Source of the DNA: Epiperipatus broadwayi
Taxonomy: Eukaryota; Animalia; Onychophora
Direction: 5' to 3'
Length of the DNA stretch: 64,000 bases
NCBI GenBank assembly: GCA_028023455.1
Contig: JAQFVV010000007.1
Span: forward strand, 9,362,001 to 9,426,000
Part shown: one piece after another, positions 10,177 through 56,668 of the stretch
How the letters are laid out: every line of letters starts with the position of its first letter
Position numbering within the stretch: the stretch's first letter is position 1
Notes under the pieces: generated by a model
What the model was told of the DNA's origin: nothing
Database searches by the model: none
Seen by the model: the letters and a program-made list of their open reading frames with translations, nothing else
Program-made: the position numbers and the translations under genes

Positions 10177-10415
10177 ATCACATGATTACCATTTTCTGTG
10201 ATTACATAAGATTTTATATAATATCTTAAGATCTAGATGCAATGTTCTCAAATATAAGACTTCTCACTGATGAAAGCCACAAGATAAAAACTTGTCCAGG
10301 GACATTGGATGAGTAGGCACTAGATAGGTTTTTATGTACAAACCTTCTTGCATCCATTAATTATTAAGGCTTGCACTGGGTGGCATTACTTTATGGAGAG
10401 TTTGCTACTGTTTTA
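10177..10415. mobile_element. HHR family A insertion (core decayed), 12-bp TSD
   Basis: Short minus-sense stub ATCACATGATTACC, then plus-sense arm with CTGATGA at 10267-10273 (GAAA mutated). ATATTCAAAAAT at 10165-10176 and 10416-10427. Confidence 0.85.
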
Positions 10416-16213: not shown

Positions 16214-16309
16214 TTTTTTTTTCATATGTCAAATGCATTGACTGGGAGCGAACCCAGGCAAGCTGCTTGGAAGGCAGCTATGCTAACTACTAGGCCACCA
16301 ATGCTTGAC
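16214..16309 (-). mobile_element. tRNA-Gly(TCC)-derived SINE (family G)
   Basis: Minus strand 16304-16234 reads GCATTGGTGGCCTAGTAGTTAGCATAGCTGCCTTCCAAGCAGCTTGCCTGGGTTCGCTCCCAGTCAATGCA, closely resembling eukaryotic tRNA-Gly-TCC, then TTTGACATATG and poly-A. Confidence 0.85.
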
Positions 16310-20950: not shown

Positions 20951-21331
20951 GGCTTTTTTTTTATAAAATTTCATCAAGAATGACATATTTTATTTTATTT
21001 TCCTATCCTATTTAAATAAAAACTGTTTGAATAATTCCAAATTTTCCTGGTTCTGATATAAAGACCTAAACAAAAACATATACCTTTTTGTCCTCATTGT
21101 TTGTATTTGTTCCTCCCATTAGATTTACTCATTTGATTGATCCTGATTACCTTTCAATAATCTATGCACCAAAAATAAATGTTCAATAATCTTTCTATAT
21201 CCATATGAACTACATCTGAAATCCAAATTCTCATCTCATTTTCACCTTCTTTCCTTGGAATTTGAAACTCTGATTCTTGCACCAAATAATAATAAACTCA
21301 GAGGCAAATCTAGGGCAAGCCAGAATAATCA

Positions 21332-21665
21332 AATGAGCTTGAATTGAAAACATTATTGTGCTTTTTAATTTGGACTTAACGCTTTATAGTTAAATAAAAA
21401 GATAAAAGGAGGCCTGCTGGAGGATTACATTAGATCCTAAGATCTAGGTACAGTGCTCTCAGATCCAAGGCCACTCACTGATGAAAGCCACAGGCTAGAA
21501 ACTAGGCTGGAGATATTGGATGAGTAGGCACTAGCTAATGCAAAAGCCTTCTAGCATCCATTGATTACACTGGCATACAATGAGTGATGCTACTATATGG
21601 AAAGATCAATCTCTGTGTTATTCAGCTTATGTAAACATAAAGAATGGTGATTGCATGATGTTTAG
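21332..21665 (+). mobile_element. HHR family A, single plus-sense arm
   Basis: CTGATGA at 21478-21484, AGCC-ACA-GGCT stem, AGAAAC, with the cleavage triplet mutated (GGC). Reads through the monomer junction to CATGATGTTTAG. No TSD seen. Confidence 0.85.
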
Positions 21666-23829
21666 AGATTTATTAGTAAACTCCCTTAGTTTTGTCTTAT
21701 ATTGTTATATTTTATACACTTTTTTACTTTTATAAAAAACCCAATTATTTTTTTAATTCATATCCATATCCATATTTTAATTCTTTCTTTCTATCCAACT
21801 TTTTTTCTTTCCTCCCATAGTAATATAACTTAAACATATATGTCATTTCTTATATAAATATACAGAAATAAATCTCTATCTATTAATTATATATATTATA
21901 AACCTTTCAGTTAACTTCTTTAGATATTCTTTTAATATAATTTAATCACTTTTTGCCCTCAGTAATTTGGTGAATTGGGAGAGTGATAGAGCTCAAGGTC
22001 CATGGATAGCAATCCAGATTTTTCACCCAAACTTCTTGTAAATTCCTGGGAAATAAACCAACTGATAATATTTAGTTTAATCTTTCAATTATATATCACA
22101 ATTTTTCAAACAAGGTACCTATCCTAACTACCTATAAATATAAATGTCCTTCTAAGACTCAAAGAGTTTACTAGGCAAGACAGTTAAAAATATAGTTATC
22201 AGTGCCAATATCAGGCAATTATACAAAGATGCCAGTGTCAACAAATAAATGTCATTCATTCTAAGCCACATTATAAATTACTAAGGATTGTTTTGACACA
22301 GTATTCTTTCATAAGTTCTTTTGTAGATATTTCTGTTCTAAAACAACATTAGGTTCAAGATTAACATTTAACCTGATATAGATAAGATAAAGTCATTATC
22401 ATAAAAAAAAATTGATACACCAAAGTTGGCAGTTCATGTTTAACAATATATTGTCATTTGTCATTGGAAACAGTTTTTCATTCTTTTTAACTTTAATTTT
22501 TTAATGCAAATTAATGAATGAAGATTTATGATAAATCTATCTAATTTTGCTTTAAAATCTGACATTTGCTTTATAATTATTATAATATTTGAAAAGAATC
22601 TAACACTGTGTCAATTTTAACAGATAAATGGTGAGCACAAACACACTATGCCATGATTTTCTTGGTTATCTATTATGGTCAAGTTTATTCATTTCTATTT
22701 TTAAAAGTAAAATATAAATGAATCCTGACAGAGATATTTTAAGTGCTGGCTATGGCTAAGCATTTATCACAAAGCTTGTTGAAGAATTGGCAATCCTCAT
22801 TGTTTATAACTTACAAGCTTAAGAGATAGGGTCATGTAATCTATGACTCTTATTTTGACTGTTTAAAGTAGATACATATGTTATTTTTGTTTTAAGTAAT
22901 TATAAACTAATTAGTGTGTAAAAATAATCAGAAATACTTAATAAACAAGGGAAAAAATTATTTTTCTTTACACTAAAAATTCTGAGTGAAAAGAAGATTA
23001 TTAGAAGAGTGATTTCATGCAGTCAACAATAAAGATGTGTTATCATAGTTGACTGTCCATAATATACTGAACTCTTCAGATTTTTTAAATTAATAAATCA
23101 ATAAAAGCAAGTTTGCAGAAAATATATTATAAAAAACCCTACATTAATTAATAACAATTATGAAAATGGTAAAACAATGATATAAAGTTGAATATCTACT
23201 ATGCTATTTCTGTAGTGAAAAAGATGTTAAAAAACCAAAGTGAGTGTTGAAGAGTTAATCACTACCATCTGCCATCTATTAATTACTAAAGCTTATACTA
23301 AGTACAATCATGGTGACAAGAAAAAAAATCACTGCTTAAATAGTTTTGTCAAATGAAGTTGTAAAGTAGACTTTGATTTACAAAATTAACATAAATAAAA
23401 CAAAAATAAGACATCACCCTTTCCTCCATTAGTAGAAGATTTATATTACATTATGATGAATTTGTTGTTTTTACAGTCTGCATGTTATCACTCGTCTAGT
23501 TAGCCTAGCAACTTCTAGGTCAACAATTAATAATAGCTAAATATTCACTTATCACTCTATTTGAAAAGGCTAATAAGATTATTTATGACCTAACTATTTG
23601 GAAAAAAACTCAAAGCTTGCTTATTCTCTGAAAAGGTCACTACATCATGAGGCTCTTAGTGATTTGCACACAAAGACTTAACTATTAAATCTTAAAATAT
23701 ATTTTAAAAATCTAAGAGATATGAAGATGTAAACAAAAGAAAAAATGGTAAGGGAACCTTGGGCTTAGCAGCAGTTAATCATGTTATGGTTTTTGCTCTA
23801 TCAAAAACACATCATCTGACTGAATCAAA

Positions 23830-29764: not shown

Positions 29765-29998
29765 TTATGCAATTTATCTATCTTACTTTGAACACTTTTT
29801 AACAAAAAAATTTTTTATTGTATATGTGATCTCATTTTTTGACTGTCCTATAGTGTTCTTCAGAACCATTCTTATTTTATTTTAAGAAATTAAAATAAGA
29901 ATGGCTCTGAAGAAGACTGCAGGACAGTCGAAACGTATGCATGTATGTACAATAAAAGGTTTTGCTAAAAAGTGCTCAAAGTAGAGTGGATAAATTGC
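29765..29998. mobile_element. HHR-like repeat family C, ~230-bp palindrome
   Basis: Near-perfect fold-back centred at ~29883. Plus core CTGAAGA-A-GACTG CAGGA CAGTC-GAAAC at 29907-29934, with a decayed mirror core at ~29840-29863. Confidence 0.8.
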
Positions 29999-31554: not shown

Positions 31555-31728
31555 TAAACCATTAAACATCACATGATCACTGTTTCCTATGCTAGCACAT
31601 AACTGTTATTAAAACAGGCAAAACTCTCCATACAGTAGTGCCACTCAGTGCCAACCATCTTCTGGCATCCATTGATTACTCTGGTCGGCATTGAGTGGCA
31701 CTACTGTATGCAGAGTTTTGCCTGTTTT
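31555..31728. mobile_element. HHR family A minimal hairpin derivative (no ribozyme core), 12-bp TSD
   Basis: Arms AAAACAGGCAAAACTCTCCATACAGTAGTGCCACTCAGTGCC and its near-complement. AATTGTTAATAT at 31543-31554 and 31729-31740. Confidence 0.9.
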
Positions 31729-32358
31729 AATTGTTAATATATTTTTGGTTCCACTTCTCTAAAGATTAGATAGCAACTGAAATATGCAGATAAATTTGTT
31801 TTTATTTTTAAACTCTCTAATAACTTAATCTCATATATATATATATTCTCATGTAAAATTAAAATTAGAATTTTAAAAATGAGACTAGTAAAGTGACTTT
31901 AATATTTCAATCTTTAAAATAAATATATATATATGTAAATATTTAATGTCTCCATTTATAATTACTTAATTATAAAGATCTTACTAGAACAACAGCCAAT
32001 GAAAGCCAACTGCCTCAAATCAAGAATTAAAGTAAAACTGTCAGATAAATGGAATTCAAAAGTAGGATCCCCTTGACCTGAGGAAATTGGCTATCATTGC
32101 TAGATAAAACACTTTCTAATTAAATAATTATAAGTGGATAAATCCACACATTAAATATTTACATCTAAACTTCCGTTATATATTATAATTTTATATATAT
32201 AATTCCCACATAAATAATACAATAATTAAAACAGTAAACAACATTTTAAAAAAATATCAATTATAATTTAAATAGAAGTACTTTCAACTATCAACTGTAT
32301 TCAAATTCTATTACAAAAACCGTTATAAATGTATACAAAAAAACAATTACGTCATAAA

Positions 32359-32691
32359 TCAATTTTCCCACAATTCATTAATTTTTATATTAGCAGCTGG
32401 TCTATTTATTAAATGCTGCTTTCCATATTTTATTAACATAGCTTCTCTAATTTTAAGTTTATTGTGATTTCTTTCATTACATATAATCTTAGCTTTATTA
32501 AAATCAAAATCAAAACAATTATTACATGTAACATTATGATCAAAAAATATTGAAGATGATACATCATCATTTTTAACATTTGCTTGTCTTGATTTTTGTA
32601 CTCGTTTATACAACAATAAATGCTCCTTTGATCTCTTCTCCAAAGTACACTGAGATTCAACTATATATGCTTTACACAAACACAAATCCAT
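32359..32691 (-). pseudogene. PLE GIY-YIG endonuclease remnant
   Basis: CLCKAYIVESQCTLEKRSKEH...FDFNKAKIICNERNHNKLKIREAMLIK matches the PLE pattern C-x-C-x2-YIGET-x3-L-x2-R-x2-EH and the downstream E-x2-(L/H)-I motif. Confidence 0.8.
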
Positions 32692-32863
32692 TTATATATC
32701 ACACAACTTTGATTTAAAATAATACACCTATTTTTTGAATTATTTATCAATCTATTTAAATTTGGAATAGTATAAAATGCAACTTTACATATATTTTTAT
32801 AAATTTGTTTTATAAATTTCATTTGTTCATTACAAATAAATGGTATTGATATCCAAATATATT

Positions 32864-33130
32864 TTATTTAACAATATATTTAGCATTTAAAATCTTATAA
32901 TTTTTATTAAAATTACTAACAATATTATAAATGAATTTATGATTATATCCAATACTTAATAAGTCCATGGTAAATACATTTACATTACTTATTTTATCAG
33001 AATTATATTTACACAATTTATCATTTCTAAATAAAAATAATTTTAAACCTGATAATTTATGTACCATTGGCATATTTGAAGTCCAAGGAATATATCCTCT
33101 TTTTTTTTTTCCAATATCTTTTATTACCAT
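32864..33130 (-). pseudogene. PLE reverse-transcriptase C-terminal (thumb) remnant
   Basis: YIPWTSNMPMVHKLSGLKLFLFRNDKLC resembles the PLE motif Y-x4-S-x-HP-x3-K-x9-R-x3-C and lies directly upstream of the GIY-YIG frame. Confidence 0.7.
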
Positions 33131-33396
33131 ACAATAATCTAATTTATTTTAATTACAAGTAACTTAAAGATCCAAATATTGAATTGACATTTTTTCTTCA
33201 AGATTTACTCCATTTTAAACCTTCTAAATCATTTAATTCATCAAATAACAAATTTATAACACCTAAATTACCACAAACAAAAACATCATCCACATACCTA
33301 TAATATATTTTAATACTGGTAATATATATTATTATCCAGAATGATATCCTCATATCTTGATATTACAAAGCTACATATTTGTAAAACTACTGATCC

Positions 33397-33622
33397 AAGA
33401 CAACCGAATGTTAAAAATGATGACGTATCACCTTCAGTATTTTTTTATCATAATATTACATGTGATTTTGATTTTGATTTTAATAAACTTAAGATTATAT
33501 GTAATGAAAGAAATCACAATAAATGTAAAATTAGAGAAACTATGTTAATAAAATATGGAAAGCAGCATTTAATAAATAGACAAACTGCTAATATAAAAAT
33601 TAATGAATTGTGGGAAAACTGA
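33397..33622 (+). pseudogene. Inverted duplicate of the PLE ORF 3' end
   Basis: Translation NVKNDDVSPSVFF...LINRQTANIKINELWEN is nearly identical to the end of the 32359-32691 frame. Confidence 0.85.
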
Positions 33623-35617
33623 TTTATGACGTAATTGCTTTTGCATACATTTATAACGGTTTTTTTATAATAGAATTTGAATATAGTTGATAATGACTAC
33701 TTAGATAGTTGAAAGTATTTCTATTAAATTATAGTTGATATTTTTTTTTTATTTTTGTTTATTGTATTAATTATTGTATTGTTTTCATGGAATTATATAT
33801 ATTCCATTATAATTGGAATACAGATATTGATTTATAAGTTACATAATTTTATATTTAATACAAGTATAATATATATACTTAACCTAGATATAATTAAAGG
33901 GGATTTGAACTCAGATTATTTGCAATGTTAAGAATACTTTCCTAATATAATATATGTGTAAACATGCCACATCTAATGAAATTTAATGTATGTTACACAA
34001 AAGATATTCATAACATATACAGTTAGGACCTCATTTCATTAATTTTTTAATCAAACAGTGAAGTTACTGCTTTAACTAGTTGATTTCATTCCAGTGACTC
34101 CAAACCTTTTTGACTTATATGATCTACTCGTCATAGCCATTATATAATATACATTACATGTCCGTTGTAAATTTATCTAAACAAAATTAAAATAGTTTTG
34201 AATTGTTAAGTATAGCCAATGACAACTAATCAAATGTATCTTTTTCCAATATGTCAGAAACTAGAAAAATAAAAAGATACAATACATTTATAGAAATTAA
34301 ATAGTTTTCAATTACCTATTTAAACCGCCAAACACTTTTTAAATAACGTTATAAGACGATAGTTACTGATTTCACAGCCCTTGGAATATCTTAGAAAAAT
34401 TTATAGCTCACAAATCAACAACTTAAAAATGTTTTATTCCCTATATATTATACATACGAAAAATTTTGAATCATATATATAAATCTTCAAAACCAAAACT
34501 TAACTCAATTATTCTTGTGGACAGAATTAAAAGTATTTTGAGTAATAAATTGCACTGTAACATAAAAAAAAAAACAACTATGAATTAATAAAATCAAACC
34601 AAGATTGAGAAATACATATGTATGCATCCATAAAAATGATAAAATCTTATATTTTCCGGCTAGCCATTCTATCTATATATGTAGTCACTGCAAATTTTTC
34701 CAATAATAAAGTTAGGATAATTTTTTCATTTTAATGGAAATATTGTACAGCACAAATATTATTTTGTAATTTTTTTTATCATATCTAAAAGCAAAAAATG
34801 TTCAGTCATAATGCTTTCCTTTGAAGTCAGAGTTTTGTAAAAACAGAAAAATATTTTCTATTACTACATTTAAAACTTTTTTTTTCTCCCAGAAATATAA
34901 AACTCATGGTTTTCAATATTAAGTTCGTAACCTGCAAGATATTTTCTGAGCAAAGCACAAAAGTGCGTTTAGTGTATTTACGTGCGTGTGTGGGTGAATG
35001 AATCCCTTCAAAATGATGAGAACGAATTTTAAAACAATACAAAAATAAAAGGTGCCTTTTGAAAGTGTTTATGTATACTATATAAATGCGCACAGACAAT
35101 CATAATTTCGATTTTTCCTTGCATTTTTATTTTTTTTTTCATTTATGGCGACATTATTTTCAAAATAGCCATTACAATTAATTAACAACAATTACGACAA
35201 ATATCACTCTTTATTTTTACGAGTGAACGCGCGCTGTAAATCAAAATATTTTTAAGTTTTAAATGTTTTTTTTTCCAACCAAAATGTTTTTTTTTCAACA
35301 AGTAGAATTTTTTTTTTTTGTAAACAAATACAAAATAGAAAAAAAACACAATTTTTGCGTAAGGTAAAAATATATTTTAATAATTTTTCAAGCTATTCTT
35401 TAATTAATTTAATTTCCAAATTGAGTTAAACATCAAAACAACTCAAATGCTTTAATAGTAAATCCGAAGTTCTAATAAGCCTCGACTTGAAAGGAAGCAA
35501 GATGGCTGTGTCTATAAAGCGACTTTTCAAAGGCATTTTAAAAGTATATATTAAAGTCCCAAGCGGAGAAAAATGATTTTGACTAATTTTTTATTTTATA
35601 GAAAATTAAATTCTTAC

Positions 35618-37507: not shown

Positions 37508-37610
37508 TTTTTTTTCTCATGTGTCATAGCATCGGCCGGGAAGCGAACCCGCTAACCCGGGACAACTGCTTTTAAGGCAGCTGTGCTGACCTCTCCACCA
37601 AATACCGATA
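37508..37610 (-). mobile_element. tRNA-Gly-derived SINE (family G)
   Basis: Minus strand GGTGGAGAGGTCAGCACAGCTGCCTTAAAAGCAGTTGTCCCGGG..GGGTTCGCTTCCCGGCCGATGCTATGACACATG with an A-rich tail. Confidence 0.75.
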
Positions 37611-39490: not shown

Positions 39491-39829
39491 AATTTTAAGT
39501 AGAAAATCTGATTCTGTCTATACATTAATTTTAAATAGAAAATCTGTTTCACCTGCTCCAGCTCTGCCACCTAGTGTGAACTAGAGTAATCAATAGATGC
39601 CATATGGGAGTGCTTAATAAAGCATAATCCAGTGCTATTGTGTTAATATTCTCAGCTGTTTTTAGCTTGTGGCTTTTGTCAGTTATTTTTAGAATTTGTT
39701 TGCATATTTCCACCAACAATAGTAAGTTACACACTAGATGGCAGAATTGATTGGAAGGAATAGTTTCTACATGTGTATGATTCATAGAATGGTTTCAATA
39801 GTCATGTCAAATGACTTCATCTTTTATTT

Positions 39830-40789: not shown

Positions 40790-41127
40790 CACAGAGGCAA
40801 AACTTTCAACACAGTAGCACCACTCCATGCAAGTCAGAGTAATCTATGGATGCAGGAAGGTTTGTGCATAAAATCCTTATCTAGTGCCTACTCATCCAAT
40901 ATTCCCAAACTAGTTTTTAGCTTGTGGATTTTATCAGGGAGGAGCCTTGGATCTTGGGTCTGGAGATATTGAACGAGTAGGCACTAGATATGGATTTTAT
41001 GCACAAACCTTTCTGCATCCATTGATTACTCTGGTTTGCATAGAGTAGCACTACTGTATGGAAAGTTGCCTCTGTGAAAACAGCTTGTGTATGCATAAAG
41101 AAAGGTGATTATGTGATTTTTGATGGT
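40790..41127. mobile_element. HHR family A tail-out inverted insertion, imperfect 12-bp TSD
   Basis: Arms ~40790-40920 and ~40957-41076 are complementary. Decayed minus core CTGATAA at 40931-40937. CACATCTGATAA (40778-40789) versus CATATCTGACAA (41128-41139). Confidence 0.85.
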
Positions 41128-41502
41128 CATATCTGACAATACCGGCATTTAAGAAATGTGGTACAATATGAGAGCCATGATATTGTGAGCCTAAGATTTT
41201 AAAATGTTACTTTGGAAATATCATGACTACTAAACAATATCTATTAATCGCATTGGCTTGTCCACATATACAATATTAATAGCAAAATTCTTTTTAAGCA
41301 TAGTTATTCCACCTAGTGTAAGCTTTAGTAATCAATAAATGCAAGATAGTAATGTTTACCTATCTAGGGTTGTCCTATCTGCTTATAGATTTCATAAATG
41401 AAGAGCTTCTGGATCTACACTTGCATCTTTTTAATCAAATGCACCTTTCCTTTAACAGCTATTTTTTATTTCTTTGTTTCACACCAAGACACCAGTCTAA
41501 AT

Positions 41503-46153: not shown

Positions 46154-46634
46154 AATATTTGAAATACAGGTACCCTTCACATATATGGAGCATATAGGGA
46201 TTTGAACTCAGACTTTCAATCACCCTTCAACTATCCATACTATCTCACACCACTAATACACATGACCCCATACATATAGAAAAGATAAATAATCACCAAT
46301 AAACGTAATTCATGCTAAACCAGCACTCATTAGTTGTTCCAGATTATCATCTCCCCCACATATATATAACCAGTCCTCAGTTAATATTAAGATAGAAAAT
46401 CTTCATACTTTAATAGACAGACTTCAATCTACTCCAACTCTGAGCATTGATTATATATAAGTGTGGGAGATAATAATCTGGACCAACTAATGAGTGCTGG
46501 TTTAGCATAAAATACATATATTGGTGATTATTTATCTTTTCTACATGTATGTGGTCATGTGTATTAGTGGTATGAGATAGTATGGATAGTTGAAGGGTGC
46601 TTGAAAGTCTGAGTTCAAATCCCCTATATTTACA
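46154..46634. mobile_element. HHR family B tail-out inverted insertion, 13-bp TSD
   Basis: Minus arm ~46154-46435 and plus arm ~46440-46634. Cores CTAATGA at 46327-46333 (minus) and 46487-46493 (plus). ATTACAAAGTCAG at 46141-46153 and 46635-46647. Confidence 0.9.
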
Positions 46635-47415: not shown

Positions 47416-47728
47416 AATAGGCAAAACTCCCCATACAGTAGTGCCACTCAGTGCAAGCCAGAGTAATCAATGGATGCAAGAATGTCTCTGAAAAATGCCT
47501 ATCTAGTGCCTACTCACTCAATATCCCCAGACTAGTTTCTAACTTGTGGCTTTTATCAATGAGGAGCCTTGGATCTGAGAGCACCATAGATAGGGATTTT
47601 ATGCATAATCCTTCTTGCATCCATTAATTATTCTGGCTTGCATTAAGTGGCACTACTGTATGAGAATTTTTTCTGTTTTAACAGCTTGAGCAAGCATAAG
47701 AAATGGTGATCATGTGATGTCTAGTGGT
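47416..47728. mobile_element. HHR family A tail-out inverted insertion, 14-bp TSD
   Basis: ACAAATATGAGTAA at 47402-47415 and 47729-47742. Decayed minus core TTGATAA at 47553-47559. Confidence 0.9.
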
Positions 47729-48769: not shown

Positions 48770-51700
48770 ATTAGTTGATGAAAGAACCTATTCTGGAAGA
48801 CTTGGTATGGCAGGGTATAAATAGAAAAGAAAAAGAAAAAAAGGGTGGTGGTATAGGAGTTATGTCAAAAAAATCTTTAAATACTGTTAAATGTCAAGAA
48901 TGTTTGTGGTTTGAGATAAAGTTAGGAAGACAAGAATGGATGGTGGCTATAGTTTATATAACTACTGGGGATAGACAAACTATAATGGAGTGGAACAGTT
49001 AGCATATATGAATGCCTAGTTAAGGATATATGGAGTTTCAAAGAAAAGGAAAAAAGAATAATGGTTATAGAAGATATGAATGGACATATTGAAGAAATTG
49101 ATGATATAGGTAATAAGAATGGACAGCTTTGGAAGAATTTTTGTCAGAGAGTAAATTTGAGCATTGGAAATTTATCGAATATTTATGAGGGATAATACAC
49201 ATGGTCTAGAAATAATATATTCCACACAATAGATTATGTATTAGTAGACAAAGAGGGAATGAATAAAGTACAGAAAATTAAGGTGTTTGATAATGAAGAG
49301 AGACTATATAATAGTGATCATAACTTCTTTATAATAGAAATGGTTAGTAATGTAATGAAAAATAGTAATAAACGTAGAAAAGATAGTGAAAAATGTGGAT
49401 GGAGAGTGAATGATAGGAATAAGTTAAAAGACTATAAAATAAAAGTTGAAGAAACCATGGAAGAGTTGGTTGGGAATGAGTATAAGGACTGTGGTGAAAT
49501 AGAAAAAGTGCAAATAGGGTTTTAGGTGAGAATATTCAGAAGAATAAAAATAATAGGAAAATGAGAGTTAGTAAAAGTGTAAAAGAGAGGGGGAAGCATG
49601 CAGAGAATATAAGTGTGCTATTAAAAACAAAGAAAGTGAAAAAGATGTTAATACTAAATGGGAAAAGTACTTAGAAAAAAAGAAGTTGGCTAAAATGGAT
49701 AATTATAGAGAGAGAATGAAATTGAATAGTAAACTGTTGGAAGATATTAATAAAAGTGGAAAAGATGGGGGTAAAAAATTTTGGAAGTACATTAAAAGAA
49801 AGAATGTAGGGGAGAGAGATTTAGTATTACTAGATGATGAGGGAATAAAGTGTAGCTCTAAGATAAGAATTAGAGATAGTCTTAAACAAGTATGTAATGG
49901 ATATAGAAAATATGTTAGATGTGAAGGACAGAGTGATAGCAAACACAAGAGCATATAGTAATGGGAATATACAATTTAGAGAAAATGAACTGAATGAGGC
50001 AAGTAAGAAATTGAATGGTGGAAAGGCAAGAGGTTTGGATGGATGGGAAGTAGAGATCGTAATGAATTTAGGGCAGAAGGCAAAATTAAAACTATTGTCA
50101 TGTTTTAATAAGATGGCACAGAAGACAGATTTTCTGGGTAGTTGGAGTAATACAAGAGTAAGGCTATTATTTAAAAGAAAGGATAAGGATCATAGAAAGT
50201 TAAACAATGATATATTGATAGTGGTAGCATCAGTGCTATATAAAGTGTTCTTGTATATGGTGGCTGGAAGGGTTGCAAAATTGATGGAAGAAAATAATAT
50301 AGTGGGAGAAATGCAAGGAGATTTTCGATCAGAGAGGCATATAGAAGATAGTTTATTTGTAGTTACACAACTTATGAATATGAGTAGGAATACAGGTAGG
50401 CAGTTATATATGGTTTTTATAGATATAGAGGTGTGTGATAGAGTAAATAGAAATAGATTATGGGTAAGTTTAATAAATTTGGGAATGGATGGAGCTTTAG
50501 TAGATATTATTAAAAAATTATATGAAATTAATTACTTTATGTATCAATTATGGAATATAGAATCAGTTAAAGTTAAAAATGGGGTGGCACTAAGGCAAGA
50601 ATGTCCTCTGTCACCTATTTTGTTTTTGTTGTATTTGAGAAAAATGGAGAGAACAATAGAAAGACTAGGCAGAGGGGTAGAGATACCATTAATAGGTGTC
50701 AAGGGAGTATATATATTGTCAGGTCTTTTATTTGCAGATGTTGTTTTTTTGTGTGTGTAAAAAAAAGGGAAGATATGGAAGTTAAGCTGAGGATATGCAC
50801 AAAGATGGGTAAAGAGATGGGGATTAAATTAAGTGAACAAAAATCAGAAGTAATGGTTATTAATACTGGGGAAAGAAGATATAAAGAATTTTTACTGGGG
50901 GATAAAAAGTTAAGTGTGGTGAATATATATAACTATTTAGGAATCATCTTAAGTAGTTAAGAAAATGTTTGGATGAATGAGAGAAAAAATTGATAAATGA
51001 AGCAAAGAAAAGAAAGGGATTGATAAATGAATTAACAATGTTCTCATATAATAAATATGATGTAGCTAGAATTGTATGGGAGTGGCAGTAGCAGTTTTAA
51101 CATATGGTAATGATGCATTATGTGTTAATAAAGAAGTATTAGATTACTTTAAAAAAGTACAAAGAGAAGTAGGAAGACATGCATTAGATGCAAAAGTGTG
51201 AATGGAAAAGGAGGCAATTAAGGAAAAATAGGATTGTCAAGTTTTTATATGAGAGATGCAAAAAGCAAAATGAAAATGTTCTGTAGATTGCAGTTTATGG
51301 ATAATAAAAGAATTGAGTTATGAATAAAGGGCAAGCAACAAGATGGGTGTGAAAGGTAATGTGATATGCAGAAGATTTAGATAAAAAATTTACATTAGTA
51401 TATTTATACAAAAGGTGGGATGATTGTGTTAGAAGAATTGTTGAGTGTTATAGTGTCAAGGAATGTGCTAGCAGAATAGATTCATTAATAAAGAATAGGG
51501 AGTTGAAGAGATGGAGAGCTAGTATGGAGAGTAAAAAGAGTTAAATATTTATAGAAGTAAACAGAATATTGGGTGTGAGTTAATTTATGATAATAGCAAG
51601 GAAAGTAGTTTACTGTTTAAGGCTCGAGCAACAAGGGAATATACGCATAAATGGAAAAATATGGGTAATTTAGTCTGCAAGTTGTGTAAGGAAGACATAG

Positions 51701-52025: not shown

Positions 52026-52459
52026 TCACAGTGCATCATGTCACATCACATAATGTTAAAATAGATGGTGTGCTGAAAAAGGCTTTTTATGTATAATTAT
52101 TTTCAATATATATTTTGCTGTTGTATATAATTTTTTTATTATTTATTTTATGATTTATTATACTAACAAAATTAATAACAATAATAAAAATATAAGCAGA
52201 ATTTCAATGACAACATAATTTAGTAGAGATAAAATTTAAAACATCTTTTAACAGAATAAAAAAGAACGAGACAACAAAAAAGATCAGTGTTAAATTGAAT
52301 GAGCTTATTAGACTTATTGGATAAATAAATAAGTAAATTTAACTGTAAAATAGTAAATGAAGGCAAAACTCTCTCCATACAGTAGTGCCACCCTGTGCTA
52401 AACAGAGTAATCAATGGATGCCAGAAGGCTTGTGCATAAAATCCCTATCTAATGCCTAC

Positions 52460-52520
52460 TCATCAAATATCCCCAGACTAGTTTCTGGCTTGTGGCCATC
52501 GTCAGTGAGGAACTTTGGAT
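52460..52520 (-). ncRNA. Type I hammerhead ribozyme (family A, minus arm)
   Basis: TCCTCA-CTGACGA(52505-52499)-TGGC CACAA GCCA-GAA-AC TA GT-C-TGGGGA. Predicted cleavage between 52476 and 52475. Confidence 0.75.
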
Positions 52521-52929
52521 CTGAGAGCACTGCACCTAGATCTTAGGATCTAATGCAACCCTCCAGCAATCACCTTTTATCTGTATTTAACTACAAAACT
52601 ATGAGAATGAAATTGAAAACATAAAAAATATTTTCAATCTAAGCTCAATAGCTTATATAGTCATATGGGTCTGAACTCAATTCAGCACCCATATTTTTTG
52701 GTGTCTTGGCTTTTTAACAACCATAGCCACCACTATCCTATTAGGCAGGATTGGTGTTAAACCACTAAGCATCACATGATCACTATCTCATACTAGCACA
52801 TAATTGTTTAGATTGAAAATATTTTTTATGTTTTCAATTTCATTCTCATAGTTTTGTAGTTAAATACAGATAAAAGGTGGTTGCTGGAGGGTTGCATTAG
52901 ATCCTAAGATCTAGGTGCAGTGCTCTCAG

Positions 52930-52991
52930 ATCCAAAGCTCCTCACTGATGATGGCCACAAGCCAGAAACTAGTCTGGGGATATTCGATGAG
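52930..52991 (+). ncRNA. Type I hammerhead ribozyme (family A, plus arm)
   Basis: Stem I TCCTCA(52939-44)/TGGGGA(52975-80), CTGATGA at 52945-52951, stem II TGGC/GCCA, GAAA at 52965-68, palindromic stem III ACTAGT and GUC triplet at 52972-52974. Confidence 0.8.
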
Positions 52992-53599
52992 TAGGCATTA
53001 GATAGGGATTTTATGCACAAGCCTTCTGGCATCCATTGATTACTCTGTTTAGCACAGGGTGGCACTACTGTATGGAGAGAGTTTTGCCTTGTTTATAAAC
53101 AATTATGTGCTAGTATGAGATAGTGATCATGTGATGCTTAGTGAAAATAGTAAATGCTTAAAAAAAAATTTAAATGCTGCAATAAAAATAATAATTTATA
53201 AAGAAGAGAGGGGAAAGGTCTTAGGTTAATTATAAGAATACTGATAAAGATTAATTCTGTGGATTATAGAAATATATATGTATAACTTAATAGTGAATTG
53301 ATTTTTAAATAGATTAAGGTAAGACAGATATCCAAAAAAAATGGAGAGAATTAGGAAATTAGGGTTTGATTTTATAACATGTAATAGAATAAGTCTCTTT
53401 TGCAAAAAATGGCATGTTCCAGGAAATGGTAAAATTATTCTTGTGTTAAAAGGTGATAGACAAATAGAGAAATTGTTGCAAAATTATATTTAAAATGTCA
53501 AAATGATAAAGATTTATAGATAGAATATATTTATATATATAAAATGTAAAATTATATGTTCATGTATATTTGTAGTCATGTATTTGTATTGTGTTTGTT

Positions 53600-53719: not shown

Positions 53720-55332
53720 TGAAAGAATGCAATGATACTGATGTTTAAAAAAGGTGATAAAAAAGATATTAGAAATTGTAAACATATTCTTTTGTCAGTT
53801 CTACATTAGATCTTTACTAAGATCAATGCACTTCACCTGCAGTAAAATCAACCCAACTAGAGGAACTATTAGATTTAAAAGTGATTTTACCACAATGCAT
53901 CACATCAAAAATTGAGAAAAGTTATTGAAAAGATTAATGAGAATGAGTTGCCTTTATGCTTTGGATTTGTAGATTATGAAAAGGCATTTGACTCTGTAAA
54001 CCTTTTCATGATATTTGAAGCATCAAAACATCAATATATAGGCTCCAGATATTATCAAATCTGAAGAATATTTATCAAAATTCATTTGTGATTGATAAAT
54101 ATATGTAACAGTGAGATTTTCTATATAAAACACCATATGATCACCATTTTCTATGTTTACACTAGCTATTAAAATAGTAGCAAACTCTTGGTACAGTAGT
54201 GGCGCCCAAGACAAGCCATAGTAATCAGTGAATGTTTAAAGGTTTGTGCATAAAATCCATATCTAATCTCTACTTATTTATTATTCTCAGACAAGATTCT
54301 GGTTAGTGGCTGTCATTTTAAGCTCATAGCTTTATAGTTAACTAAATAAATAGAAGGTAATTGCTGGGGAGTTGTATTAATCCAAAGATCTAGGTGCAGT
54401 GCTTTCATATCCAGGTTCCTCACTGATGAAAGCCGCAAGCTAGAAACTATTCTGGGGATATTGGATGAGTAGGCACAAATAGGAATTTTATGCATAAACC
54501 TTCTAACATCCATAGATTACTATGGCAAGCAATGGGTGCACTACTATATGGAGAATTTGCTACTGAAGTGATTTGGCATCTTCAAATTTTTTTATAGCTG
54601 TTTATAAAAAATATTTTGTGAATTAAAATAATAAGCTAAGGAAATAAAAATATGTTGAAGATGATGTAATTGTTTTTGCAAATAATGCTTGAGAGATTCT
54701 GGAAATATTGCAGGAGTTATCAGATGATATAAAAAAAGTAGGATTAAAAGTATAAGCTAAAATGACTGAAATAATGTTCAATGACTTTTCAAAAATGAAG
54801 AAAAGAAATATTGCTAATAATGAATTAGAAATAACTATAAATTTACTGATCCATATTATTAATACTAATGAAAGCTTAATGGATGAAATTAACCATACAA
54901 TTAAACTTGGTTAAGTGGCTTTTAGAAGAAATAAACTTACTATTCAAAAAAAATATGCCTATGTGCTAGATAAAGAAGATTTTTAATTAGATGAATTTTG
55001 ACAGATGTTAAAAGGTAGAAATACAAAGACATCAGATCAGAGTGAAATATGGGAAGATGTACTTTAAGACTTACAACAAGGGATTGAAAGTGACATCAAG
55101 AGGCTGAAATGGAGCTAAACTATACATATTGCCAGAAAATATGATAATAGATGAAATTGTTGAAGTATTAAACTGACTGCCAGAAAATGTAGAAAACCTA
55201 GAGAGAGACTATGTTTGAGATGGGCAATGATATAAAGAAATTTGCTGGTGTGGTGTGGGAAAATGAAATAAACTTAAAATATTCTTATGTAGTTGATTGA
55301 TTGTGATTGAAAATGATGATGATGATGATGAT
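53720..55332 (+). mobile_element. RTE-1-type LINE relic (RT to 3' end), interrupted by family A
   Basis: ILMFKKGDKKDIRN, FVDYEKAFDSV (~53966-53998), DDVIVFAN, IKRLKWS and a (GAT)n tail at 55309-55332. Confidence 0.85.
54125..54566. mobile_element. HHR family A tail-out inverted insertion nested in the RTE
   Basis: Minus arm ~54125-54318 and plus arm ~54320-54566 with CTGATGA at 54423-54429, AGC-CGCAA-GCT, AGAAAC and a TTC triplet (stem III G mutated). TSD not resolved. Confidence 0.85.
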
Positions 55333-56091: not shown

Positions 56092-56668
56092 ATTAAACCA
56101 CTAAACATCACATAATCACCATTTCTTATGCTTGCTCATAACTGTTATTAAAATAGGCAAAACTCTCCATACAGTAGTGCCACTCAAAAGTAAATGATGA
56201 CCATGTGATGTTTAGTGCTTTAATACCAATCCTGCTTAATAGTATAGTGATGGCTAAGGTTATTAAAGAACCAAAAATACTAAAATGTATGGGTACTGAA
56301 CTGAGTTCAGACCTATATGACTACATAAGCTAATGAGCTTGGATTGAAAATATTATTGTGTTTTCAATTTAAGACTCATAGTTTTGTAGTTAAGTAGAAA
56401 TAAAATATGGCAGCTGGGACTCATAGTTTTGTAGTTAAGTAGAGATAAAAGATGGCAGCTGGAGGGTTGCATTAGATCCTAAGATCTAGGTGCAGTGCTC
56501 TCAGATCCAAGGCTACTCAATGATGAAAGCCATAAGCTAGAAACTAGTCTGGGGATATTAGATGAGTAGGCACTAGATAGGGATTTTATGCACAAGCCTT
56601 CTGGCATTTATTGATTACTCTGGCTTGCACTAAGTGGCACTACTGTATGGAGAGTTATGTCTGTTTTA
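56092..56668. mobile_element. HHR family A insertion (short minus stub plus near-full plus monomer), 11-bp TSD
   Basis: ATATACAGAAA at 56081-56091 and 56669-56679. Core ATGATGA (C3 to A at 56520), otherwise intact with GAAACTAGTC. Internal 45-bp duplication at 56373-56462. Confidence 0.9.

Follow-up and report, generated by a model that had tools for sequence, protein, structure and literature searches.

Family A, an abundant non-coding element with a hammerhead motif in an onychophoran genome, and its resemblance to Penelope-like elements in insertion scar

Animal non-LTR retrozymes are a published class (Cervera & de la Pena 2020, PMC7229834) of tandem 150-450 bp units, low in GC, each with a type I hammerhead and with target-site duplications longer than 4 bp. 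Hammerheads also occur in Penelope-like elements (PLEs), and the dimer-type architecture, with a helix III of 1-2 bp and a palindromic loop of 2-4 nt, is the standard for metazoan type I hammerheads in tandem repeats (PMC4209133). The link between retrozymes and PLEs has so far consisted of their occurring together, of the hammerheads they share and of their related terminal repeats (PMC7229834; 2026 preprint of Li, Clavereau & Pollet), the preprint arguing from co-distribution and terminal-repeat relatedness that retrozymes derive from PLEs. PLE insertions have hallmarks of their own: they form partial tandems, lie beside an inverted copy truncated at the 5' end, and have a tail of 30-40 bp at one end but not at the other. 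Craig et al. 2021 call the mechanism behind these hallmarks undefined (PMC8557442). Neither inverted arms nor a tail is discussed in PMC7229834 or in the 2026 preprint, so the scars left by the element described here, family A of Epiperipatus broadwayi, are a modest addition, suggesting from the insertions themselves that the retrozyme integration machinery is of Penelope type.

The window (the whole 64-kb stretch of DNA analysed) had been described in an initial annotation as containing one non-coding sequence of about 455 bp at nine places. All nine are copies of family A, recovered by BLASTN with 52360-53143 at 73-99% identity and starting at about 10177, 19039, 21300, 31555, 40790, 47416, 52360, 54128 and 56092; the older copies are 73-90% identical to 52360-53143, and extra small fragments lie at 39565, 41309 and 41458. 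The unit measures 457 nt, as given by tandem arrays elsewhere in the genome with a period of exactly 457 bp (3.8 and 3.2 units, 99% identity). Its GC content is 39% and it contains no ORF, the longest stop-free run in a trimer being 62 codons, which agrees with its description as non-coding. Duplications of 11-16 bp flank six of the nine window copies, five of them exact, the same number of copies as reported before over a slightly narrower range (11-14 bp). Unit positions are given on one natural unit (L013:4034-4490), in which position 1 is the first base downstream of the predicted cleavage site. The 784-bp insertion at 52360-53143, bracketed by an exact 13-bp duplication (Table 1), consists of two arms that share a 3-nt microhomology (TTA) at their inner junction, with 52360-52642 the reverse complement of 52808-53090 (283 nt, 99%) and 52763-52810 that of 53096-53143 (48 nt, 100%). 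Mapping of both arms on the unit shows head-to-head, circularly permuted copies and not an element with terminal inverted repeats.

Table 1. Family A features in the window, with the insertion at 52360 resolved into its parts and the other eight copies below it.
Feature	Position	Strand	Remark
Left target-site duplication, 13 bp, AAAATAGTAAATG	52347-52359		Exact
Left arm, 451 nt, about one full unit, unit 122->116	52360-52810	-	Outer end 'short' (116)
Left-arm hammerhead motif, CUGACGA (N7 = C) variant	52470-52511	-	Descriptor match
Right arm, 336 nt, unit 291->169	52808-53143	+	Outer end 'long' (169)
Right-arm hammerhead motif	52939-52980	+	Predicted cleavage between 52974 and 52975
One-sided 'tail', unit 117-169, solely at the right arm's outer end	53091-53143	+	Compare PMC8557442
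Right target-site duplication, 13 bp	53144-53156		Exact
Older two-arm copy	10177-10415		Exact 12-bp duplication ATATTCAAAAAT
Old two-arm copy, about 73% identity	19039-19680		Without clear duplication
Old copy, left arm short, right arm long with tail	21299-21667 (approximate bounds)		Without clear duplication
Short two-arm copy	31555-31724		Duplication 13 bp exact (16 bp with 1 mismatch)
Old two-arm copy	40790-41130		Degenerate 12-bp duplication, 2 mismatches
Two-arm copy	47416-47728		Exact 14-bp duplication ACAAATATGAGTAA
Old two-arm copy, long end left, short end right	54128-54565 (approximate bounds)		Without clear duplication
Two-arm copy, whole unit inside right arm	56092-56668		Exact 11-bp duplication ATATACAGAAA

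Family A is a real, abundant and recently active non-coding mobile element with a hammerhead motif. The assembly is 5.6 Gb long with about 29% GC, and CpG observed/expected is 0.29 across the window and all loci. A search of it with family A gave 57 scored matches among 1918 first-look candidates, most of them 97-99% identical. Density is patchy, at nine copies per 64 kb in the window and one per 85 kb in loci retrieved for other purposes, so that a copy number of the order of 10^5 is a rough extrapolation only. High copy number and recent activity had been proposed from the window, and copies 97-99.9% identical with exact duplications bear this out.

The insertion footprint was defined by mapping 27 young insertions, together with the window copies, on the unit. 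In 24 of the 27 there are two arms with their sense 3' ends outward, the remaining three being unresolved. Arms range from 19 to 1730 nt (0.04-3.8 units) and run across the predicted cleavage site; their inner ends are scattered over the whole unit and are joined by an overlap of 0-11 nt, rarely by filler. Duplications of the young insertions measure 11-16 bp, mostly 13-14, and are mostly exact. The outer ends lie in two narrow zones, unit 115-124 (median 118, 'short') and unit 158-174 (median 170.5, 'long'), both within a GUUUA motif, and every resolved insertion (22/22) has one short and one long end, the stretch of about 52 nt between them being present as a one-sided tail. By inspection, the older window copies keep the same rule. 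The flank matches the continuation of the template at both outer ends, with 1-8 nt of microhomology averaging 2.2 nt as against 0.6 nt when flanks are exchanged, a value reached in none of 10,000 permutations. Rare haplotypes are common to both arms (e.g. 148A+339A in L022 and 148A+432C in L020), which indicates one template and one event rather than nested insertions. Published PLE insertions likewise combine partial tandems with an inverted, 5'-truncated neighbouring copy and a one-sided tail, which in them is 30-40 bp and not about 52 nt as in family A (PMC8557442). Judged from sequence, the family A insertion scar is that of Penelope-like elements specifically.

The genome also holds PLEs against which this scar can be read directly. 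A relic at 32190-33803 in the window has two outward-pointing arms and remnants of YVDD and GIY-YIG motifs; its family yields at least 96,000 first-look candidates and includes several intact reading frames of 788 codons. Copies of this abundant family end at one site or 45 nt further on, and wherever both arms are visible (L045, L047, L050 and L054) there is one end of each kind, an end rule identical to the short/long rule of family A but with a tail of 45 nt. The abundant PLE, whose family includes loci L050, L053 and L054, inserts into (TA)n, and its duplications are masked because of these targets. Family A differs from it in having no ORF and no (TA)n targeting, and in the one PLE family compared no sequence shared with family A was found. 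The abundant PLE was therefore not taken to be the helper of family A. A second candidate, the reverse-transcriptase ORF at 49897-50760, was set aside as LINE-like (endonuclease plus reverse transcriptase) and not PLE. The LINE-like remnant at 48775-50960 contains endonuclease-like and reverse-transcriptase ORFs (RVT_1, 34.9 bits).

The right-arm motif of the 52360 copy reads UCCUCA-CUGAUGA-UGGC(CACAA)GCCA-GAAAC-UA-GUC-UGGGGA, and the sense-strand unit begins with its final UGGGGA and ends with the remainder, from UCCUCA to GUC. The core (C3 U4 G5 A6 N7 G8 A9, G12 A13 A14, A15.1-U16.1, H17) is complete in young and old subfamilies. Helix I has 6 bp (UCCUCA/UGGGGA), helix II 4 bp, and helix III (AC-UA-GU) an A-U and a C-G pair round a 2-nt loop, so that no hairpin is possible within one molecule; ACUAGU being palindromic, two copies could jointly build a 6-bp helix III of the dimer type. 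The same helix I and II lengths, 2-bp helix III with a 2-nt palindromic loop and stable helix III from two copies only are found in newt satellite 2, Schistosoma Sm-alpha and PLE hammerheads (PMC4209133). A strict descriptor matches two sites in the window, one in each arm of the 52360 copy, and none in 200 random 64-kb sequences of equal first-order composition. As far as sequence can tell, the hammerhead of family A is of the dimer-only metazoan type, with cleavage predicted after GUC.

The initial annotation had called the motif a type I hammerhead, and this stands as regards the core and the pairing, both of which are kept between subfamilies, and fails as regards the Rfam model. The Rfam hammerhead models match nothing in the whole window, at gathering score or at E<=10, nor in a 181-nt slice even at E<=10; the motif scores below 12 bits, under the RF00163 threshold of 34 bits. 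The models miss family A because helix II is closed by U-A or A.A and not by G-C: the usual G10.1-C11.1 pair, present in other dimer-type metazoan hammerheads, is replaced at 10.1-11.1 by U-A in young copies and by A.A in old ones, and hammerhead activity may consequently be low. At the next pair, 10.2-11.2, the old subfamily has A-U where the young one has G-C, one compensatory change. Across the helices 82% of cells are paired as against 20-40% with the partners slid, the shuffle control not being exceeded, and the covariation is a single compensatory event, not significant against shuffles. Position N7, the sole free core position, shows a frequent C/T polymorphism, at which even the left and right arms of the copy at 52360 disagree; it lies in a CpG of a CpG-depleted genome and may simply be decay, and the difference between these two arms fits decay after insertion.

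A covariance-model hit, lacking for family A, is provided within the same genome by a retrozyme-like sister family (about 411-414 nt; L036, G000:C809:202331-205374, and L037-L039) that likewise lies in two inverted arms and passes RF00163 at 35-40 bits. Its hammerhead, CUGAAGA-GACC..GGUC-GAAAC-CG-GUC, has a helix I identical to that of family A (UCCUCA/UGGGGA) and likewise a short palindromic helix III, GAAAC-CG-GUC where family A has GAAAC-UA-GUC. A 25-nt hairpin module is common to the two families (unit 248-272 in family A) and contains GAGTTCAGACCC, which resembles a Pol III B box.

The predicted fold is consistent with an RNA of the same sense. Modelled as a circle, the sense strand reaches -153.8 kcal/mol and has 70% of its bases paired, helix I running on into a long helix that joins unit 1-80 to unit 350-425, whereas 100 dinucleotide shuffles give -116 +/- 5.9 kcal/mol (z = -6.4) and the antisense strand of the unit reaches only -106.9 kcal/mol. 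A palindrome at the DNA level would fold about equally on both strands, and the modelled asymmetry points to RNA in the hammerhead sense.

By these features family A is a fresh example of the published animal retrozymes and not a new class. Like them it has a non-coding unit of a few hundred nucleotides, each unit with its own type I hammerhead; it forms tandem multimers, its GC content is under 50%, its duplications exceed 4 bp, its circle is strongly self-paired in the predicted fold, and PLEs reside in the same genome. It differs in its unit, which at 457 nt is at or just above the published 150-450 bp, in the closure of helix II by U-A or A.A, and in that most of it is present as dispersed two-arm insertions and not as long arrays.

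We consider it likely that family A is a 457-nt non-autonomous non-LTR retrozyme and that a PLE supplies the reverse transcriptase and the GIY-YIG endonuclease which insert it. From the literature, its RNA would arise from tandem copies; hammerheads of neighbouring units would pair through the ACUAGU palindrome and cut after GUC, and a host ligase would close the strongly self-paired, unit-length RNA into a circle. The endonuclease would then nick the target with a stagger of about 13 bp, and each of the 3' ends so freed would base-pair with the same RNA, at one of two short GUUUA-containing sites separated by about 52 nt, and start reverse transcription there. The reverse transcriptase would run round a circular or multimeric template until microhomology of 0-11 nt lets the two cDNAs pair, each completing the second strand of the other.

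A broader reading, which we advance tentatively and hold to be somewhat less probable than not, is that family A, its sister families and the resident PLE all record an obligate double target-primed reverse transcription of Penelope type, with rolling-circle copying in the case of the retrozyme. Here a cut with a stagger of about 13 bp would yield two 3' ends, each annealing by a few nucleotides to one of two repeated short motifs that lie 45-52 nt from each other at the unit's end, and the two cDNAs would pair and serve as each other's second-strand template. The spacing of the motifs would explain the one-sided tail, and the mutual templating the inverted arms. Were double priming correct, the identical units found in most arms would represent rolling-circle copying of an RNA circle. 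A related process is reportedly known from human L1, in the twin priming of Ostertag and Kazazian (2001), where both 3' ends of a staggered cut are said to prime on the RNA and to leave an inversion whose 3' ends face outward and whose halves meet at a microhomology. Family A resembles it in its inverted arms with outward 3' ends and in its microhomology junctions, but twin priming is occasional in L1 and its second priming site arbitrary, whereas in family A two arms are the rule (24/27 insertions) and both priming sites are fixed. The young family A insertions and their exact duplications constitute a large natural data set that could help to resolve the steps of Penelope integration.

The nature of the template bears on whether the hammerhead takes part at all. 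Of 15 multi-unit insertions, 11 show no difference among their units at the non-CpG marker sites, even where the haplotype is rare, a pattern compatible with a homogeneous array or with a single circle copied in rolling-circle fashion. In the other four (L013, L014, L035 and L012) the units of one arm disagree at non-CpG sites that are polymorphic in the family, unit 29, 62, 295 and 339; a single monomer circle cannot explain these arms, and a heterogeneous multimeric transcript or template switching is needed. In L013, L014 and L035 the outermost unit of both arms is 29C/62C while inner units are 29T/62T in varying order, a pattern recurring in three independent insertions with different duplications; either template switching or a heterogeneous source array common to the three could lie behind it. 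We regard it as unlikely, though deserving of weight, that the same PLE-type retroelement carries a hammerhead that is a weak or dead relic and is copied from uncleaved multimeric array transcripts with no RNA circle. The four insertions with differing units would be expected from such templates, every long arm crosses the predicted cleavage site uncut, the closure of helix II is altered, the Rfam score lies below 12 bits, and minimal PLE-type hammerheads cleave poorly in vitro (PMC4209133). Against this stand the unit identity in 11 of the 15 insertions, the core kept intact through old and young subfamilies with one compensatory change, a fold that is strong and specific to the sense strand, and the formation of circles shown for related animal retrozymes (PMC7229834).

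It is far less probable that family A is no family of its own and that its copies are 5'-truncated pieces, pseudo-LTR plus 3' end, of a separate autonomous Penelope-like element. PLE insertions are indeed usually heavily 5'-truncated and carry the hammerhead in their terminal repeat (PMC8557442, PMC4209133), but the perfect 457-nt tandem units, up to 3.8 in number, close on themselves without coding sequence, no sampled arm runs on into an ORF, and the abundant PLE family has no similarity to family A. A DNA transposon (MITE or foldback element) or DNA-level satellite, with the palindromes as terminal inverted repeats, might be suspected from long inverted arms that are 99% identical, and is already contradicted, since the one-sided 52-nt tail means that the ends are not inverted copies of each other, each copy has its own inversion point, duplication length varies from 11 to 16 bp, units are circularly permuted and variable in number per arm, and both ends are microhomologous to the continuation of the template. 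The proposal of a retro-insertion in place of a MITE is thus upheld: duplications of fixed length and constant terminal inverted repeats, which would have spoken against it, are absent, inner junctions vary, and several units per arm and microhomology at the priming ends are further evidence in its favour.

For annotation, copies like those of family A will be misnamed foldback elements or MITEs, and the hammerhead escapes Rfam. Within the window, microRNA-like Rfam matches at 31626-31713 prove to be the inversion junction of a family A copy. Family A sequence is also present in contigs from runs of at least four organisms, none of them on record as RNA; four such run sets consist of thousands of short contigs with DNA-like strand-switch joints and without informative ends, and the kind of run is guessed.

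Other elements were encountered in the window. Family B, at 46154-46634, is a second, unrelated non-coding two-arm insertion with a duplication of at least 13 bp (ATTACAAAGTCAG) and a one-sided tail of about 38 nt, in which GAAAGUC is followed by a tRNA T-arm-like GAGUUCAAAUCCCC; families A and B show no significant homology, with a score of 50 where shuffled sequences average 40 +/- 6. On the minus strand lie a tRNA-Gly(UCC) at 16234-16304 (Rfam, 37.6 bits) and a tRNA-Leu(UAA)-like ARAGORN call at 37527-37606, the latter giving in Rfam only a weak tRNA-Sec-like match; either may be a gene or a repeat derived from a tRNA. A long, near-perfect AT-rich hairpin at 29821-29949, matched below threshold by plant and animal microRNA models, is probably the inverted repeat of another element.
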